Source of the DNA: Blepharisma stoltei ATCC 30299
Lineage: Eukaryota; Protista; Ciliophora
DNA length: 64,000 nucleotides
NCBI GenBank assembly: GCA_965603825.1
Contig: CBFDEM010000023.1
Location: 434,001 to 498,000 of the forward strand
Direction: 5' to 3'
Of the stretch, positions 26,764 through 38,291 are shown piece after piece. The translations under genes and the position numbers were made by a program. The notes beneath the pieces are model-generated. The model saw only the letters and a list, made by a program, of their open reading frames with translations, ran no database searches and was not told the DNA's origin. Positions within the stretch are counted from its first letter, which is position 1, and the number at the start of each line of letters is the position of its first letter.

Positions 26764-27426
26764 TTACTCACTTGCAAACTCTTTAATTTTATTTAGCCAC
26801 TCCATATACAGCCTCTGTTCTCTATCTATTGAATAAACTTCGAGGAAAAGACCAAGATCATCATTTAGCCCCAGCCCTCTGAAATGGTCAGAAATTGCAT
26901 CTTGCAGCATCTTGTCCAATGTAAAAAATCCTGGCCCTCGATAAATGCTTCTGTTCATCATTTCTATATTGCTTATAAAATCATCTGTGTTTTCAATCAT
27001 CATCACGTTTTCGCACCAAATCGATGAATTCCTAGTATAGCACTCATAAACGAGGCCTTCTTTAGTTCCATTCTTTTTCAGCAGAACCTTAAAATCCACA
27101 CTTTGCTCAGGCTGATAATTTTCATCCTGGGCATTCTTTTCATCTTCTTCAGTCTTAATTGGATCAGGCAATCTTGCATTAAAATGGATCTCGACGTCAT
27201 ATTCTTGTGTTGTTTTTAAAAGCTTAATTAATATTGAATTATTTTCATCAACTAAGCGGAATCCAGCTTTTCTTAGAAAGAATGGTATAGCTTCATCTTG
27301 TTGGTATTCAGTCAGTTCTGCATCAATGCATTTTTCTATTGACTTCACAAGACTTTTTGACATCAAGCTTGTGAACGGTCTCCTAAGAAACTTCTGTGAA
27401 AGGAAGCTTATTTGTCGAACCAGCAT
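26764..27426 (-). CDS. MAM33: Mitochondrial acidic matrix glycoprotein (MAM33/C1QBP/p32 family)
   Basis: Basic N-terminal presequence; YRGPGFFTLDKMLQ...LGLNDDL..F...YSIDREQRLYMEWLNKIKEF is the typical family C-terminus. Confidence 0.88.
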   Translation of the reverse strand: MLVRQISFLSQKFLRRPFTSLMSKSLVKSIEKCIDAELTEYQQDEAIPFFLRKAGFRLVDENNSILIKLLKTTQEYDVEIHFNARLPDPIKTEEDEKNAQDENYQPEQSVDFKVLLKKNGTKEGLVYECYTRNSSIWCENVMMIENTDDFISNIEMMNRSIYRGPGFFTLDKMLQDAISDHFRGLGLNDDLGLFLEVYSIDREQRLYMEWLNKIKEFASE

Positions 27427-27440
27427 CTTTATTAATTTAA

Positions 27441-30400
27441 ATGGAAGAAAGGAAATTCAATCTCCAAAAAAGTGGCAAGTTAAGCACCTCTTCTTCGTCT
27501 ATGGGGAATTCAGGCAGTCTTTCTCATAGAGGAGCAGAAATTTCTCCATTGAGAGCTTATAATGATTATTCAAGCGTGGAAACGAGGAAAATGGACCAAA
27601 CTACGTTTAGAAGCAGCGAAGAATTAACAAGAACTGCGACTTATGTTAATCCAATGCATTCTGGGAGAATTTATAAAGAAATTGAGCATATGTAAGGTTT
27701 AGGTAGAAATCGGAATAATTCGTCAAAGAAAATGACACCAAAGCCGCCATCTCAAAAACCTGAAAGTTCGATTCGGTTTGAAGGAGCGGGAAGAAGGCAA
27801 TTTAAACGAGGAAGTGGGAGCAAGCTCTCAAAATCGAAATCGCCTATAAGATCTGTTGGGAAAAGGTCATCAAAAACCCCAACGCCAAATATGAATATAC
27901 AATATCTTCCAACTTCTCCAAAAAACTTATCTCAGCCTGTATCTAAATTAATTTCAAAAGTATCACCAATGGTTAGAGAATCTAGACACAGCGAAGGATT
28001 AATTATCCCAAAAGACCAAGCTGATATTATAAGACAACACAAAAAATCAACCCCGATTGCATTAGACAAAAAATATGGACAAGATAAAAGGATTATTTTT
28101 ATGCCTTTTGAAAGCAGAGATGACACCTCAGGAGCTGTAATTTTTAACGATCATGGGTTTATTGAATTTCCTAAAGAAGAAAAACCATCAAAATTCGTGA
28201 AAAATAAAACAATAAGTGCAGAAAATTACCAAATTGAAGCTTTGCAAGCGCTATCTTTTGTAAAGAATTTTAAAAAGCGAAAAAATTTTAAAAAATGAAG
28301 AAAAGAAGTAAAAAGTGCTTTGTTTGTAAGAAAAAGGCATGAATTTGTGAGAAATTTCTGGGGGAGTCAAGTTATTGCAATGAAAGAATATGTAAAAATT
28401 AAAGAACAGATAAATACTTTTGCAACCATTAAAGAAAGCTTTTTAAATGAAGATTGGTATAGAAACAGTGCTGAAGAATCATATAAAAATATCATAAATA
28501 GTGTCAACAAATTAATGCAAAAAATTGGATCAGGGATTAAGAAAACTTTGGATGAGTCTTTAAAGACAAAATTTGGGGATAAACTTGTGTATAACAAAAT
28601 TGTCAAAATTTTAGAAGAAAAGAAAAACTCTGGCGGCAGAAGATTGAGGGAAACCAAGGAAAGCAAGCTATCTCGAGAAAAATTATTGGAGATATTTCTC
28701 AAGCTGATTTATCTTAAATATCAAAGCGGAATTGTTGAATTAGTTGAAGACACATATCAAGGATCACTTCTTTTATTTTGCAGCTCAAAAAGGCCAAAAT
28801 TTGCTCTGGTACTTTCTATTGATGATATCTTAACTTTTGTTCCAGACCCTGAAGCTTTGACAGCTAAAATTTTAGAATCTCTTGAAGCTTTTAAACAAGC
28901 AATTATTAACCATGCAATACATGATGAAATCAACTCAAATATTTTTCAAGCACAAATGTTTAACTTTGAACATATACTGGAAAATAATGGAATATTAGCA
29001 GACACAAATAAAAATATTCAGCAAAATTTTAATAAGGATATTGCACTTGCCAAAAAGTTTATCAGTAAGTTCAAATCCCTTGAACAAATTATACCAGTAA
29101 AAAAACAATGAATTACTGATATAGAAAATAAAGAGATCAATATCGGCTTATTTTTTCAGAAAAATTATAAAATTCTTGCAGGTTATTCCAGCCAGCTAAA
29201 CGAATTGCCTTTTCCAAGCTTCAAAGCAGGAATTTTTAATATTAAAACCGAATCACTAAAAACACAAATGCAAGGCTTTATGGATTCAATAAAAAGCTTA
29301 CTAAAAGAAAAACTTCCAGCTATAATTGTTAATGAAATCAACGATTTCAAAGAAAATATAAGGACATTTAGCAACCTTATCAATGAAAGATATTCATCTA
29401 TTTCACAAATTTCACAGCATTGAAAGCAGATTTCTGAGTTAAAGAAAGTTAAATTAAATGAGCTTGACAATAAAAAAGATTTTATTACTGAGAGTATAAA
29501 ATATTTAAAAAAAGAAGGGATTTCTGAAACAGCTAATGTTCTTAAAGAAGATTTATCGTATGACCAAAAACTATTTAATAATCAAATTAATGACATAGAA
29601 AAGTGTTATAAAGATTTGAGGCCAGCCCTAGAAGAGCAATTACTCGAAAATTCTTATAAATTATCAAAAAAAATCAAAAAGTTTGAAAGTAAATATATTT
29701 TGCATTATCTACAAGACACACAAAGAATTTCACATGCAAGCAACACATTAAAAGAAATAGAGAAAAGAGGAGAAGCTTTACTTTCACTAAAACAAAAAGT
29801 CGAGCTTTATGTAGATTATTATATTTCTTTACAAGAATTAAATTCAGGTAATCCTTTATCGTTTCAGCTTCAATGCAGAGGAGATTTTGATATATTGCAC
29901 ACTCTTCATAAAGACACTTTAAACCTATGAAAAATAGTCATTGATTGAAAATCTTATACTGGAAAATGAATGGAAACAAACTTTTCACAATTAAATGTCT
30001 CCAAAATGCTTGAAGATATAAAAAATATTAACGAAAAATTAAAATTTGATTGCTATGAAAGCCTTCTGTTTACAAAAACAGCAGAAAAAATAATTAAATC
30101 AATAAATGAAGAAATTAATGGATTCCTATGCATGTCTGAAACATTAATTGAGCTGAAAAGTGAACTTTTAAAGCCAAGGCACTGGGAGATGATCGTAAAT
30201 GCAATTAAAAAGCCTCATTTATTGAATATTTCTTTTAAGCTGCAAGACCTCAAAGATTCAAACTTAGACCGATATGAGTCCAAGCTTAAACATATTTTTG
30301 AGCAAGCCAAAGAAGAAAACAAGCAGACTGCTTGTTTATCAATGATTAAATCTCTATGGGAAAGCTTAGAATTATCCACTGACATCTACAAAGGACGTTT

Positions 30401-33400
30401 AGATACTTTTATTTTGACAAATATTGACCAGGTTGAATCTTTAATAGAAGAGCATTTAGCATTGATCGAAAGCATTGACAAAACAATTTATTCAGAATAT
30501 TTGCAAGATGATATAACAGAACTTAAAGAAAAACTTACACTGATGAGTGATGTGTTAGAAACATGGACAGAGTGTCAAAACTCTTGAAAGCAGCTTGAAC
30601 CAGTTTTTAGCTCAGGATATATGCAAGAGACTATGCCAAATGAGTATGAAGCTTTCAAAGATCTTCAAACTACACTAAGGTCCATTATGTGAAGTGTACA
30701 CCAAGCACCAAAAGTGCTAAACCAATTATTGGCGCCTAATAAAAGCACAGTCCTTGAAGATATATCTTCCAAAATTTGTGACCTCCGTAAGAATATCAAA
30801 GCTTATTTAGAAAATAAAAGAGCAAATTTTCCAAGGTTTTTCTTTCTCTCAGACGCTCAACTCCTACAATTTTTATCACTTATTTATTCCCAGCAAGAAT
30901 ATGATAAGCATTTATCAATAATTTTCCCTGGTGTTTCTAAATTTTATATCAAAAAATTGAACTCAAATAAGCCTATTAAAGATGAAGAGGAAGAAGTTGA
31001 CCTTGACGTCGCCCCTTTTAATTGTTTTTCTCCTGCTGTCAATGAAATAATTGATCCTTTTGAATTTTCGATCCCTGAAAATCATGAAATAATTAATATA
31101 GAAAATCAAGAAACTGAAAGCAAAGGAAATGTACAAATTTTGCAGCTAGAAGAAAGAGATGATTATATAGTAGCGAAACAAAGAAGACTGAGAGAAAAAT
31201 ATGGAGGAAGCGAGGTAGAATTAGGTGGAATGATGCCTTATGAAATTTTAGGAATGGTTGGACATAACGGAGAACTTCTTCTATTTGAAAGAGCTGTTGG
31301 GATTCATGAAGGAATTGAAGGCTGGATGGGTGAAGTTGATCACCAAATGAAAGATACCCTTGCAAAAATGATTTCTTTTGCTGTAGCAACGTTCCCAAAA
31401 CAAAGCTTAGATGAATGGGTGCTTGATTTTCCTCAGCAAATCATATATACCTCTATTTTATTGATTTTAACTCATGAAATCACAGAACTCATGGAAGATA
31501 AAGATAAAGAAAATTCTTCAGATTCCGAAGTTAGTATTGACAAAGATGACCCAATCCCAGAAATTTATGAAGATCATTTTTCTAAGGTTTATTTTGGAAG
31601 CTCAGCTCAGTCTCATTCTTTAGAACCTAGTAAAGAAGACCTTATGCGATATTTACAGAGTAAAAGCTATAAGGGTTTATATCTCAGGCTTCAATTCTGG
31701 ATAAACCAATTAATAAAAAGTTTTCAAAATGACCAGATAGGAGGTCAGAAGCTGGTTCCAGTACAAATTATGTCTTTAAGATCTTTGGTGTATTTTTTAA
31801 GCTACCAAAGAGATATTGTCGGAAATTTAATTGAAAAAAAAATTTACTCTACTGGTGATTTTGAGTGGCAAAAACTGTTTAGGGTATATTGGAAAGCAAA
31901 TGAAAGTATCAGTAAAATTGAGTGTGGAGGTTTGCATATGATTCAAGGCAATGAATATTTGGGGACTTCATATAGATTACTCTGCACTCCTATTACTACA
32001 AGATATTATGTGTTCATAAGCAGTGTTCTCAGAGAAACCTCATCTGTATTATTTAAAACCAATCCAAGCCATGACTATGCAGGCGATGTCTTTGAAGAAT
32101 TCAGCAATCTTTGTGGGATGGCCAATAAAAGGATTTATATAAGTTCAGACTCAAAAATGCAAATGCTAATGCAATGTTTAAATGGGGCTGCCCTAGCTAA
32201 TGTTTGGATTATATTTGAGCATATAGATAGGCTTAATCATGCAAACCTACAGGTATTGACAAAAGAAATACAAATGGTTCAGCAGCAGTTTCTTATAGCT
32301 GAGGTTGGAGTTGAGAGCCAGCAAGAAGATAGCATGAGGGCTCCTAAAAAAGATAGGCAGGTAATAGAACCAATCCCAGTTCCTGAAGCAGGCTCAAAAA
32401 CTTTAATAGAGAAGTCTGGCGTCGGGACTTATTCATATCCAAGCAATGAAATATCAGATTCTGTAATAAAAGAGCGGCCGCTATTAAAATACCCAAATAC
32501 TATGTTTGTTGTTATGGCTTCACTATCACCGAATCATTTTCAGAAAGACAACGCACTTTTATCAGCTTTACAATTGTCATTTAGATGCATGGAAATGATC
32601 AGGCCTGATATCAAAATGATTTCTTCGGTTATGCTTATAAGAGAAGGATTTAGGTATTATCAGTCCCTCAGTGTTCTTATCCATAAATTCACCAAAAACT
32701 TGATTGAGAAAGTCGATTATCTGCTGGCAATTACAAGAAGAGATATCATGCTTTTAGTGTTAATAGCAAAAAAGTTCAGAGATATCTGCATAAGTGAATG
32801 TGATTTAGAACAAAACGAAATAAATTCTGTTATAAAAGCATGTAGAATGCTGTTTTACCAAAAAATCACGATTCAAAGGTCAGGAAATTTAATTTTGAAT
32901 AAAGAACAGCTAAACAATTCGCAAGAAATTATAGACTGCTGCGTTGAGAGAACTTTTAAAACTGAAAAATTCCCAGATTTTGAACAAAATGATTTAAGAA
33001 AAGGCCTTGAAAAAGTTATTAAAGAAGAAGGATTAACAATCCAAGAGTCTCAGCTTCAGTTGTGTGAAGACATTTATCATGGATTAAGAATAAATAGAGG
33101 TGTTTTAATATTAGGCCCATCTATGTCAGGCAAATCTACGTCATTATCTTTATTATCATCAGCTCTCAAAAACCTCCATAAAATTGAAATTAAACAGCAC
33201 ATTTTGAACCCAAATATTTTTACTTTTAAACAACTTTTCGGAGCATTAGCAGTTGAAAAAAATATTAAAGGCGGGATTTTGACAAAAATAATGCAAATAG
33301 TAAGTGAAAAATATGAGCAAGAAACATCATGGCTTGTTTTTGATAGTAAAAATATAGAGCCTTGGTGGGCTGATTCATTTATCCCAATATTAGAGACCTC

Positions 33401-36400
33401 ACCTTTATTATATTCAGATACCATTACTTTTGAGACTTGGGAAATGTTGTTAACTCATATTTCTTCGATAGCCAGCAGACAAGATATGATTTCGCTACCA
33501 TCTATGACTCAACTTATAATACCACAAAATATGTCGATTATATATACTGCAGAAAATGCTTCCTCAGCTCCCCCAAGCTTATTTACAAGAGTTAGTTCAT
33601 TATTTGTTGACAATAAATCATTAGAATGGGAAGCAATTATTGTCCCAAGGATAAAAACAATTAGCATGAAATTGATCCCTTATGGGATTACAAGCGAGTG
33701 AATTTTAGGGTTTTTTATCGAAAAACTTAAACATTTAATTGATGAAGCTGATGAGCAATTCAAAGAATTGAGCCACTGAAATAGCAAAAATTTAATGATG
33801 GGGCTTATAAGAAATTTTGAAGTATTCTTAAGAACAGGAATTTTAGAAATATTTTCTCCATTAGAATTTGAAAAAAATATGAATATATACACAGAAGTAG
33901 AAATGAATAAACTTGTAAATAAAGAATTTATTCATAAAATCCCAGAAATCAATGAGCTGAAATCACGGCTTGAAACAACTATTATTCATTCATTTGTATG
34001 GTCTTTTGGTGCAATTCTTAATGGTGAAAACAGAAAAATATTTAATAAAATTCTTTTCAATTCCCAAAAATTATTGAAATTGAAATATTTTTATCCTCAA
34101 ACTCTGAATGCATTTGAATCATTTATAGATTTTGACAATTTTAATTTTCTCCCAATTTATGAAGAATCTTCAGTATATTTAAACGATCTTTTACCATCAA
34201 ATTCAATAATAATTCCTTCAGAAGAAATGGCAAAAGCATACTATTTATTAAATACTATTTTATCACCAACCAATTATAGCCCTCAGTCTTTTCTTCAGCA
34301 TGTTCAGATAGTAGGACCTTCAAGTTCAGGAAAAACATCCCTTATTAAGCATTTTTTACATAAGAATTCAGATTTATTTTATAGCAAACATTATACTTTC
34401 AACCCCTCAATAAAAGGTTATCATTATTTTGACATATTGCTTAAAAAATCTAATTTTTGCGAAAAAAATAGCACAATGCTTATAATAGAAGATGTTCATT
34501 TAGATGATAGCAATTTTACTTTGGAAAGAATAAAATTTTGGATTGAAAATAATGGGATTTATGATCCTAAAAAGCTTTCTTTTGTCATCTCAGAAAAAAT
34601 TAATTTTATAACCAGCACAATACAAATGAATATTCAATGTAGTAAAAATACAACTTCAATTTATATTGAGACACCAAGCGACAAAATTTATAAGCAGATT
34701 TTGGTATCCTCGATTTCAGAAAATGCTGATAGCGCAGATTTTAGTATAAATAACTACATAAAACCTATAGCTAGCATTTACCTAAATACAAAAAACTATC
34801 TTCAGAATAACAAATACTGTGGCATAGATAGAATTATTGAAAATTTCAAACAGTTCTATTATTTCTCAACAATTTCTGGAAATGAAGCTATCGAAAAAGA
34901 GTATATCAGCGAGCTTATTATGCATGAGATACAAAGAGGCTTTAGTGATTTCGTAGCAAATGATCAAGAATTTAATAAAAACCTAGTAGCTTTGATTAAT
35001 ATAAAACTTCGCACAGAAATAAAAGAAGAACCATATCTATTTTTCGATTACACAGAAAAGAATTCTAAAGAGTTTAATAATAAAATTACAGTAGAAAGAT
35101 TGCCGATTATTCAACAAAAATTAGCTGAAAAAATGAAAAAACTAGAAAAAAATTTTGAAGAAAACTTAAATATTATGACACCTTTATATTTTCAAAACTC
35201 TTATACAAACTTTATATGAAAAATTTGTAGGATACTTTATTTAGAAAATACTCATAGTATTTTGTGCGCTTCACCTGGAAATCTTTCATATGAATGCCTT
35301 CAAATTGCAGCTTCTTTAACTGATTCTAGAATTTTAAAACCACAAGTTAAGCAATTAAACGATTTTCAGCACTTCAGGTATTTTTTCGAGCAAAGCTTGA
35401 TTCAGGCTCTTGAATGTGGCCAAGAAAACCCTTGCATATTTCTTTGTGATCTCCAATATTTGAAATCCGAGGAATATATCAAACTTATTAGTTGGTTTAT
35501 TACAACTGACTCATGAGATATCAACTTGTTCTCAAAATCGTTTTCAAAGCATATTTCAAAGCGAGAAAAAGAAAATAAATTCAAAAATACTAAGCTCCAA
35601 AGCAAAACATCAGCTAGTATCATGAGTACAATTAAAAGAAGATTCCACATCGTTTTTATTTTACCATCCAATAAAGATTTTGATATTCTGTCAAAAGATT
35701 ATCCAAAATTAATTTCATGCTGTGAATTCATTAAATTCGATAAAAATAATCATGAAGGGTTTCAAAAATCTGAATCAAGTATAAATATTAATGAGATTAT
35801 AACTGATATCATGCAAATGATTGAAAATAAATTCAAAATTTTGAATGATAAAAATACGATGGAGAAACCTTTATGTGATAAGAACAAATATCCCGATTTT
35901 CTATGCCAAAAAAGGGTTTTGCTACTTATGGAAATTTTTAATGAAATTGCTTCTTATATAGAAAGCTTTATTGATTCGGTTAAAGATAATCTTAGTCAGT
36001 CTATTGGGAAATTTGATGATCTAGTATTGAAATATCCAGAGCATTCAGCTAGTTTAAAAGAAACTTTAAAAGGATTGAATCAAAAGTTATCTATATATGA
36101 AAAATTTACTAGCACTCTTATGACAGATAGTCTTATTTTAGCATGCAATTCTGTTTATCTTGGAATTGTAAGTGCTGAAGAAAAATTTGACATATGAAAA
36201 GCTTTGGCAGAATTACTACAATGCAAAGGGTTAAGTATTGATGAATGCTGGAGATCCAATGATAAATCCAAAATCAAACAAAAATTCAAAAGTTTCGCAA
36301 AAATTTTCAACAAAAATCTGAATGATTCTGATCTGTGCACATTGAATGCTCTTGAAGCTTTAATAGCTTCATCGCTTTCGAAAGGCTTATCAATATTAAT

Positions 36401-38291
36401 TGATGAACATGGGGAATTTGATAGCATTTTAGAAACAAATACAAAAGAAAAACCTATTAAGATAGTGAGCTCTTCAAGCTCTTCAGATAAGCTATGAAAA
36501 GATGGAATTACTGTTGATATTCCAATTTTCCTTTATGATTATTCTGAAATAAATCCAGAAGGAGATTTAGAGTCATGAAAAATAGGTCCAGGATACACTC
36601 GTGATGATCCTACTTATTGCATTTTATATGAGCAAAATATTTTAAATGTTTCTTCGTTTTCAAAACAGATATACTTATTTAAGCCAAGAGCTGATATGTA
36701 CCTTCCATCAATATTTTATTCATCAAGCCTGTTTAGTTGGATCTGCACTATTGATACCAAAAAATGTATTGAAAAACTGATTGAAATTTTAATGAGCCAT
36801 TTGCACCCAGACGAGTACAATATAATATTAAAAATGAAAGAAGAAATAGAAAATGCGAAAAATCAAGTTGGTGAACTGAAAAATAAAAAAATTGCAGAAA
36901 TTGAGCGCTTTGAAGATAAAAGCGACATTAACTTACTAGTGAAAATATTGTCTGAATTTAATGATATGAAAGAACTTTTAAAAGATAAGAAGAGTTCTTG
37001 CCACAATTTTTTAAAAAAATTTGAAATCCTTAAAAAACATTCTGAATATATTTTAATGATATATCTATCATTGAAGCAGACAGGCAAAATTACTGGAGAT
37101 ATTACTTACTCTTGAAAAACTTTCAAAACCATTATATCAATGATTGTTTCTAAAAGTATGAGAGACGCAATTTTAGAAGCAAACGAGCAAAGCATCGAAA
37201 GCTCCAAAGAAAGTAGTCAAGTTGTAATCGATGATGATTTTTTCAATAGAGAAATAATGCCAGCTATATTTAACGCAATAAAAAACGGCATCCCACAAAT
37301 GCATTCTTGCTTATTTTCATTAATTTTTGCGTTAAAAATTGCTGTGAAAAGATCTGTGATTTCTGATATGGATTTTGCTTTATTTGGAAAATTTTTTGCA
37401 AAAAATAAAATTTCTTTAACATGAATGTCAATTTTGGATAAAGAAGTTCCAACATGCGATACCTGGAAAGAAATATACGGGGCTTTGACCACAGAAATTC
37501 TGCCGTCCCATCCTGAAATTGAAGATTGCATTTTAGAACTAAATGCAAAAATATCACAAATGAAATGCAATATGAAAAAAGTTTCCTCCATTTTTAAAAC
37601 AGTCCTATTAAATTCGGACTATAAGAACTTGCCTGTATTTTCAAGGATATTGATTGCAGTTCATTATCAAGATTTCACATTAAAATCCTTACTAAGACAA
37701 TTTATTTTTGAGCAGCTGAATTCGCTATTTGAGTATCAAGAAGAATTTGCAAAATTAAGCCACTTTATAAAATGTGCAAGCTGGTCTCTTCCATTAGCAT
37801 TGTTTTCTAGCCCTGGAATGAATGTTGTTAATACAATATGCTCATTAGCAAATTATTATGGAGTTGGATTAGAAGTAATAAGAACTGATCCAGAAATGGA
37901 CCAAGACAATAAAGGAGAAAATTCAGAAACAGTTGAGCTTGTTTTGAGATGCGCCACAGAAGGGACATGGGTTTTGATCTCTACCTCGAAATTCCCAAGT
38001 TTTTGGAATAATGTGACGGAAGGCTTGAAATACTTGAGGGAGAGCAGTGTTATTAGTAATACATTCAGACTTTTTATAGATATGCAGGGGCTGAGACATT
38101 ATGATATACCAGATCAATTTTTACATGATGAAGCAGTGAGATTTTATATTTCAAAAACAAATATGGAAGATTTAGAAGGATATAATGATATTTGGAGCAA
38201 TCTGTTGTTAGAAGACATACTGAAAGTTGAAAGCTTAGCGAGAGGAGAATCTACACTGTTTCCAGAAGATTTTGAATTAGACTTTGAGTAA
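27441..38291 (+). CDS. Divergent dynein-heavy-chain-like protein (~3611 aa), probably motor-dead and lacking the stalk/MTBD
   Basis: After the 15-nt intron 27692-27706, the + strand ORF fragments from 27732 to 37425 are in one frame joined only by TGA. Linker motifs LKPRHWEMI, CQNS-W-KQLEPVFSS, KRANFPRFFFLSD, DFEWQKLFRVYW, GNEYLG; AAA2 GPSMSGKST; AAA3 GPSSSGKTS; AAA6-like EGTWVLI...FRLFI. Confidence 0.9.
27692..27706 (+). other. 15-nt spliceosomal intron
   Basis: GTAAGGTTTAGGTAG. Removal deletes an in-frame TAA and fuses ORF 27441 to ORF 27732. Confidence 0.85.

Follow-up and report, generated by a model that had tools for sequence, protein, structure and literature searches.

A stalk-less Blepharisma dynein heavy chain with an erased AAA1 ATP site belongs to a ciliate family of dead dyneins

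A dynein heavy chain of the ciliate Blepharisma stoltei has lost the parts that make a dynein a motor. Its gene lies in a 64,000-nucleotide stretch of the strain ATCC 30299 genome (contig CBFDEM010000023.1, positions 434,001 to 498,000; hereafter the window, whose numbering we use). The product is a member of the dynein heavy chain superfamily, in which six tandem AAA+ modules come after a linker, in the order typical of dyneins. The ATP site of AAA1 is erased, and the stalk with its microtubule-binding domain (MTBD), the small domain of AAA6 (AAA6S), and the C-terminal domain are missing. Because there can be no AAA1 hydrolysis and there is no MTBD, established dynein mechanism allows neither a power stroke nor track binding, and the protein is almost certainly not a motor. 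The original prediction, made from the sequence of the window, had proposed a pseudo-motor kept for a non-motor role. That proposal now stands on firmer ground, with the AAA1 ATP site and the MTBD both absent and purifying selection strongest on the large domain of AAA1 (AAA1L).

AAA1 retains none of the features of an active motor. The Walker A motif (GxxGxGKT), the Walker B DE pair, and the sensor I asparagine are all absent. When AAA1 is aligned with solved dyneins and with 21 further dynein AAA1 regions of this genome, NPSHDYAGD falls on GPAGTGKTE and FEHIDR on FDEFNR. The motifs on which the original prediction rested (KTNPSHDYAG, IFEHIDR, GPSMSGKST, GPSSSGKTS, and ASPGNLS) all lie where it had placed them, and to its catalytically dead AAA1 we add the loss of sensor I. 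It was also right that the P-loop of AAA4 is lost, which is minor evidence for a pseudo-motor, and that those of AAA2 and AAA3 are intact. Unseen splicing, which it had raised as a possible rescue of AAA1, was rejected: no GT..AG excision of 14-30 nt within 31900-32300 yields a Walker A or Walker B motif. Database searches and folding of this protein used stretches inside exon 2; the AlphaFold2 (AF2) model of AAA1-AAA3 has a mean predicted local distance difference test score of 77, preserves the AAA fold, and matches dynein motor domains. A 55-aa insert (window ~32310-32500) that separates Walker B from sensor I is predicted to be disordered, yet is ~77% identical in L051, a homolog on a contig from SRR24908292 that belongs to a second species reading TGA as Trp.

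The stalk and the end of the motor domain are also gone, losses that the original prediction did not include. Measured from the end-of-AAA4 motif to the end of coiled coil 2 (CC2), the stalk is 73 aa long here and 62 aa in L051, compared with 302-350 aa in other family members and 331-350 aa in canonical chains. Neither PF12777 nor stalk profiles matched this protein. In other family members the stalk tip weakly resembles the canonical MTBD (HHalign 90%), and the coiled coil is the better conserved of the two. L051 is 55% identical to the B. stoltei protein and has an intron at the matching position. Since it shows the same collapse, the stalk loss is real and shared, and an assembly error can be ruled out. 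The possibility that the gene is split and its stalk lies at another locus was likewise rejected, as a search of the genome (41.46 Mb, 64 contigs) with an ortholog stalk found a paralog alone. A partial PF12777 match without a motor stands by itself at G000:C46:697643-698212; a family-type stalk query misses it. The chain ends shortly after the strand motif of the AAA6 large domain (AAA6L) and so has neither AAA6S nor a C-terminal domain. Only 57-75 residues follow this motif in the heterotrich-type full-length members checked, compared with ~490-510 in canonical chains. In the member GI 403332737, which we take to be from Oxytricha trifallax, 259 aa follow it, mostly as an unaligned tail. The AF2 model of this part shows a well-formed buttress, AAA5 small domain, and AAA6L; the AAA5 large domain (AAA5L) is uncertain. 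Across the models the ring modules retain their fold and match those of dynein motors.

The dead AAA1 is under stronger constraint than the modules that keep their P-loops. Synonymous sites are saturated between the B. stoltei gene and L051 (proportion of synonymous differences, pS, 0.76; fourfold-site identity 39%), and for this reason we give no ratio of nonsynonymous to synonymous divergence (dN/dS). Overall dN is 0.38. It falls to 0.10 in AAA1L, which is 86% identical (pS 0.80, saturated), and is 0.22 in the linker and 0.6-0.8 in AAA3-AAA4. Identity to the Oxytricha-type member is 51-52% in AAA1L and AAA6L but only 12-13% in AAA2-AAA4, where alignment gaps account for part of the low value. 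On these sequence comparisons, the strongest constraint is on dead AAA1L, its neighbor AAA6L, and the linker. Because these parts are the best conserved while silent sites are saturated, the gene is not a pseudogene; the neutral evolution that the original prediction had named as the sign of one is not seen. Although the engine, the foot, and the closure of the ring have been lost, no part of the protein is more constrained than the dead site, an indication that the linker-AAA1-AAA6 surface has a non-motor function.

The gene belongs to a family of dead dyneins. By their profile scores, approximately 127 sequences from database searches separate cleanly from canonical dyneins. Among the relatives left after de-replication at 90%, an AAA1 Walker A is present in 0 of 57, compared with 186 of 186 canonical dyneins, and a Walker B DE in 0 of 52. 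The replaced P-loop is moderately conserved across the family (P 63%, S 45%, H 55%, D 47%, then D/E, F, E 94%, and F 86%), and the Walker B region has the pattern W-x-x-F-E-H (W 100%, F 75%, E 90%, H 67%). Nearly all members covering AAA2 and AAA3 keep GK[ST] at both sites; one, P0004, appears to lack the AAA3 lysine. The family forms a single clade with support of 100 in two trees. In the motor tree, this long-branch clade attaches outside all classes, a position that carries a long-branch warning.

Members of the family differ in their genetic codes. They include standard-code relatives, one member (L046) with a 15-nt intron, and two nanochromosomes with C4A4 telomeres, in the TGA-sense and TAR=Gln codes. 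Judged from its sequences, the family occurs in Heterotrichea and Spirotrichea at least. The family searches matched no member under a Tetrahymena or Paramecium name, a blank that does not prove absence. We found no published description of the family in literature searchable without subscription journals, and it has apparently been undescribed until now. A whole stalked member is carried by L054 (1-13916), a Euplotes-like nanochromosome with C4A4 telomeres, TGA as a sense codon, and several frame changes.

Blepharisma stoltei has a second copy with complementary losses. This paralog (CAG9323337.1; G000:C33:682707-693374, L029/L030; 3548 aa) has the same dead AAA1 and a full-length stalk, but much of its AAA5L and some of its buttress are deleted. 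Because it groups with the gene described here in both trees (support 88 and 94, both unstarred), the sequences suggest that duplication followed by complementary deletions produced the two copies. One genome thus offers stalked and stalk-less versions of a dead dynein, making their function testable; heterotrichs such as Stentor are amenable to RNA interference. Two further unusual heavy chains were observed in the genome. An orphan chain of 4588 aa (G000:C23:73350-87137, L027/L028) lies outside the family; its AAA1 reads GDSNAGKT and LEEVNYL, and it has no PF12777 match and only a partial stalk-profile match. A divergent chain (G000:C41:620617-610895, L037/L038) has a 3241-aa frame that ends early, GIQCSGKT and FDEFNK in AAA1, and a recognizable stalk.

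By its sequence, the tail is of the class-9, single-headed inner-arm type. The family tail profile matches class-9-like tails over 554-562 columns (HHalign 99.7%, E about 1e-26), compared with partial matches at E 5e-11 or worse to other dynein classes; this match does not separate 9-alpha from 9-beta. A segment of the form LP(F/L)V.NF..RK.L.KW matches F..F..WK.F..W+K of DNAH6-type chains, and the motif F/L-x-x-W-R/K, which we take to be a centrin site, is kept in the aligned members. The tail gave no match to the DHC_N1 dimerization domain. The motor tree does not name the parent class because of its long branches. Kollmar 2016 (PMC5100056) associates class-9 tails with actin and centrin and argues that it is the tail that determines where in the axoneme a dynein sits.

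The gene model has a short intron and a reassigned stop codon. B. stoltei reads UGA as Trp and has introns of 15/16 nt (10.1101/2021.12.14.471607). The reading frame 27696-38291 contains 17 in-frame TGA and is open solely if TGA is sense; with TGA as Trp, the intact frame of ~10.8 kb claimed by the original prediction holds. The deposited protein CAG9319683.1 (P0165) matches the genomic frame identically from ATG 27732 on, with exon 1 added from ATG 27441, the true start codon, and it is reproduced exactly once the 15-nt intron is excised. Exons were joined for this identity check and for the codon alignment; full-length P0165 was used in alignments. The annotation pipeline published for B. 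stoltei requires >=10 spliced RNA reads, that is, at least 10, to call an intron (10.1101/2021.12.14.471607). Because the deposited model has the intron, transcription is indirectly supported, assuming that the pipeline was the published one. Pfam matches comprise DHC_N2, AAA_6, AAA_7, and AAA_8, the domains that the original prediction had named for a check, together with AAA_lid and a weak Dynein_heavy. Features are listed in Table 1. Upstream, a MAM33-family open frame (26764-27426, minus strand) is arranged head-to-head with the dynein gene. Only 14 bp separate the dynein ATG from the first codon listed for this frame, whose true start thus probably lies further in. Downstream lies a VPS13-like gene (48260-40755, minus strand) of ~2500 codons, read through TGA.

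Table 1. Features of the dynein gene, in window coordinates.
Feature	Position	Strand	Remarks
Whole gene	27441..38291	+	3611 aa; TGA=Trp; TAA stop; = CAG9319683.1 / UniRef100_A0AAU9J7X2, B. stoltei
Exon 1	27441..27691	+	low-complexity N-terminus
Intron, GT..AG	27692..27706	+	15 nt; 16-nt intron at matching position in L051
Tail, class-9 type (IAD5: DNAH6 / dynein g, b, e), single-headed	28173..29945	+	HHalign
F-x-x-W-R centrin-type motif in tail	28287-28304	+	motif alignment
Linker (Pfam DHC_N2)	29946..31895	+	72% identity to L051
AAA1 pseudo-P-loop KTNPSHDYAG	32055..32084	+	Walker A erased; alignment
AAA1 pseudo-Walker B IFEHIDR	32211..32231	+	DE -> EH; alignment
AAA1 sensor I region MASLSP	32514..32531	+	N -> S; alignment
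AAA1 sensor II arginine	32739..32741	+	kept; alignment
AAA2 P-loop GPSMSGKST	33114..33140	+	intact; motif
AAA3 P-loop GPSSSGKTS	34314..34340	+	intact; Walker B region IIEDVH; motif
AAA4 loop ASPGNLS	35268..35288	+	Walker A lost family-wide; motif
Stalk stub	35904..36123	+	73 aa instead of ~330; MTBD absent; short helical hairpin predicted (AF2)
AAA5 large domain	36300..36884	+	divergent; low-confidence AF2 model
Buttress coiled coil and AAA5 small domain	36885..37790	+	kept; well-formed in AF2 model
AAA6 large domain	37791..38246	+	highly conserved within family; chain stops 75 aa past last conserved strand motif

We somewhat favor a role in which this non-motor heavy chain docks in an inner-arm slot and acts there, on microtubule structures of cilia or basal bodies, as a static scaffold or slot-filler. 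The tail would bind actin and centrin and dock at a class-9 inner-arm site, in the position of dynein g, b, or e, perhaps in only some cilia or some region of cilia. A rigid linker-AAA1L-AAA6L face, uncovered by the loss of AAA6S, could then contact a partner, such as the nexin-dynein regulatory complex (N-DRC), a spoke base, or a neighboring motor. Contacts onto a dynein linker do occur: the N-DRC touches that of IDAg (Walton 2023, PMC10266980). AAA2 and AAA3 would hold nucleotide structurally, and the net effect would be an inner-arm position occupied or tuned without pulling. The stalk would be dispensable in this copy, probably following a duplication in the Blepharisma line after which the sister copy kept its stalk and lost part of AAA5L and the buttress. 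Several points weigh against this role. The tail is only ~20% identical to canonical class-9 tails and may therefore dock elsewhere, such as on centrin-rich cortical fibers. In most relatives the stalk is full-length and its coiled coil conserved, and the ancestral role of the family may thus involve the stalk. Docking, location, and the partner of the conserved face are all things that we infer from sequence.

More tentatively, heterotrich and spirotrich ciliates might possess an ancient motor-less dynein class that sits in an inner-arm slot, perhaps in oral membranelles. The dead AAA1 pocket (the P-S-H-D-Y-x-G-D loop and the E-H Walker B) could, together with AAA6L, form a new binding or metal/ligand site, with the job split in Blepharisma between stalk-less and buttress-shortened copies; we regard this as possible but doubtful. 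A weakly DNAH6-like Stentor heavy chain, SteCoe_26764, is listed in an oral-apparatus-specific regeneration gene set (PMC9371601 supplementary file 1). It could not be mapped as a family member, and because full-length orthologs reach much higher scores with DNAH6-type chains, we treat it as no more than a lead.

Other non-motor roles are less likely. The protein could be an assembly or transport partner like sea-urchin dynein-X, pairing with an active heavy chain and inhibiting it in the cytoplasm or during intraflagellar transport. There is a precedent in DNAHX (PMC11785096), and the linker and AAA1/AAA6 surfaces are conserved. The AAA1-3 model is also slightly closer to pre-powerstroke/phi structures (template modeling score 0.68-0.70) than to post-powerstroke/microtubule-bound ones (0.60-0.64), a weak indication, as the model may be state-biased. 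However, the tail is of a monomeric class lacking a DHC_N1 match, and the phi arrangement of dynein-X uses a stalk crossing that this copy cannot make; we consider such a partner unlikely. A non-axonemal anchor in centrin-rich cortical or oral fibers (myonemes, membranelle root fibers), attached via the tail motif, seems more doubtful still. The conservation of that motif would suit it, if our reading as a centrin site is correct, and so would the membership of the family, identified in heterotrichs and spirotrichs, groups with oral membranelles, and not under a Tetrahymena or Paramecium name. Nevertheless, it is the entire tail, beyond the motif, that aligns to inner-arm tails; the lack of oligohymenophorean members is a blank in the searches, and standard-code organisms contribute several members.

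A nucleotide sensor, or a residual ATPase run by AAA2 and AAA3 as in a midasin-like remodeler, is improbable. GK[ST] is retained at both sites in nearly all covering members, and the AAA3 Walker B region is acidic. However, divergence is greatest in AAA2-AAA4 (12-35% identity), P0004 has apparently dispensed with the AAA3 lysine, and the ring has no AAA6S. Of the roles suggested in the original prediction, a non-motor function survives, while the nucleotide sensor is weakened by AAA2-AAA4 being the least conserved parts of the family. Finally, large deletions and strong divergence from canonical dyneins might indicate a decaying pseudogene or an assembly artifact. This is largely refuted, and we give it very little credence, since the 3611-codon frame is intact, dN stays low in AAA1L while dS is saturated, a second species shares both the stalk loss and the intron position, and the intron in the deposited model is indirect evidence of spliced reads. 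A non-motor scaffold docked through its tail remains the role that we favor.

Non-motile dyneins are already known, but the ciliate family forms a lineage of its own and its losses go further. DNAHX, a non-motile sea-urchin heavy chain reported to be absent from protists (PMC11785096), shares with the B. stoltei protein a degenerate AAA1, an impaired stalk/MTBD, lack of motility, and long evolutionary retention. It differs in being animal-only and of outer-arm origin, and in its 5272 aa with insertions in the stalk and AAA4S; it still binds ATP in AAA1, has a Walker B, and keeps the C-terminal cap. The ciliate protein instead has a class-9 tail, a fully replaced P-loop, and deletions rather than insertions, with no AAA6S, C-terminal domain, or stalk. 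Although it resembles the known non-motile chains in principle, none of the marks of DNAHX (outer-arm origin, animal host, insertions, AAA1-bound ATP) is found in it. DNHD1 (Kollmar class 11) is another orphan heavy chain, with an AAA1 from which catalytic Walker B residues are missing. It is reported to be necessary for cilia (as summarized in PMC11785096), and class 11 is described as metazoan-specific (PMC5100056). No DNHD1 was among the close matches of the family database searches, and our trees contained no DNHD1 sequence; we thus treat it as an analog, not a demonstrated relative. Class-9 inner-arm dyneins (IAD5: DNAH6/DNAH14 and Chlamydomonas dynein g; 9-beta tails of b and e) share full-length tail homology, the centrin-type motif, the linker, and the six-AAA order. 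They differ in being active motors with AAA1, stalk, MTBD, and C-terminal domain intact, and in the motor tree, whose long branches make placement uncertain, the dead-dynein family does not group among them. Kollmar classes 10-17 (e.g., class 12, with no typical stalk or microtubule-binding site) are likewise lineage-restricted, with a known tail on an altered motor domain. They differ in being fungal, holozoan, or oomycete, with none described from ciliates and no analysis of ATP sites in that account (PMC5100056). With DNAHX reported absent from protists and the DNHD1 class metazoan, the ciliate protein is a separate and more extreme case from a protist.

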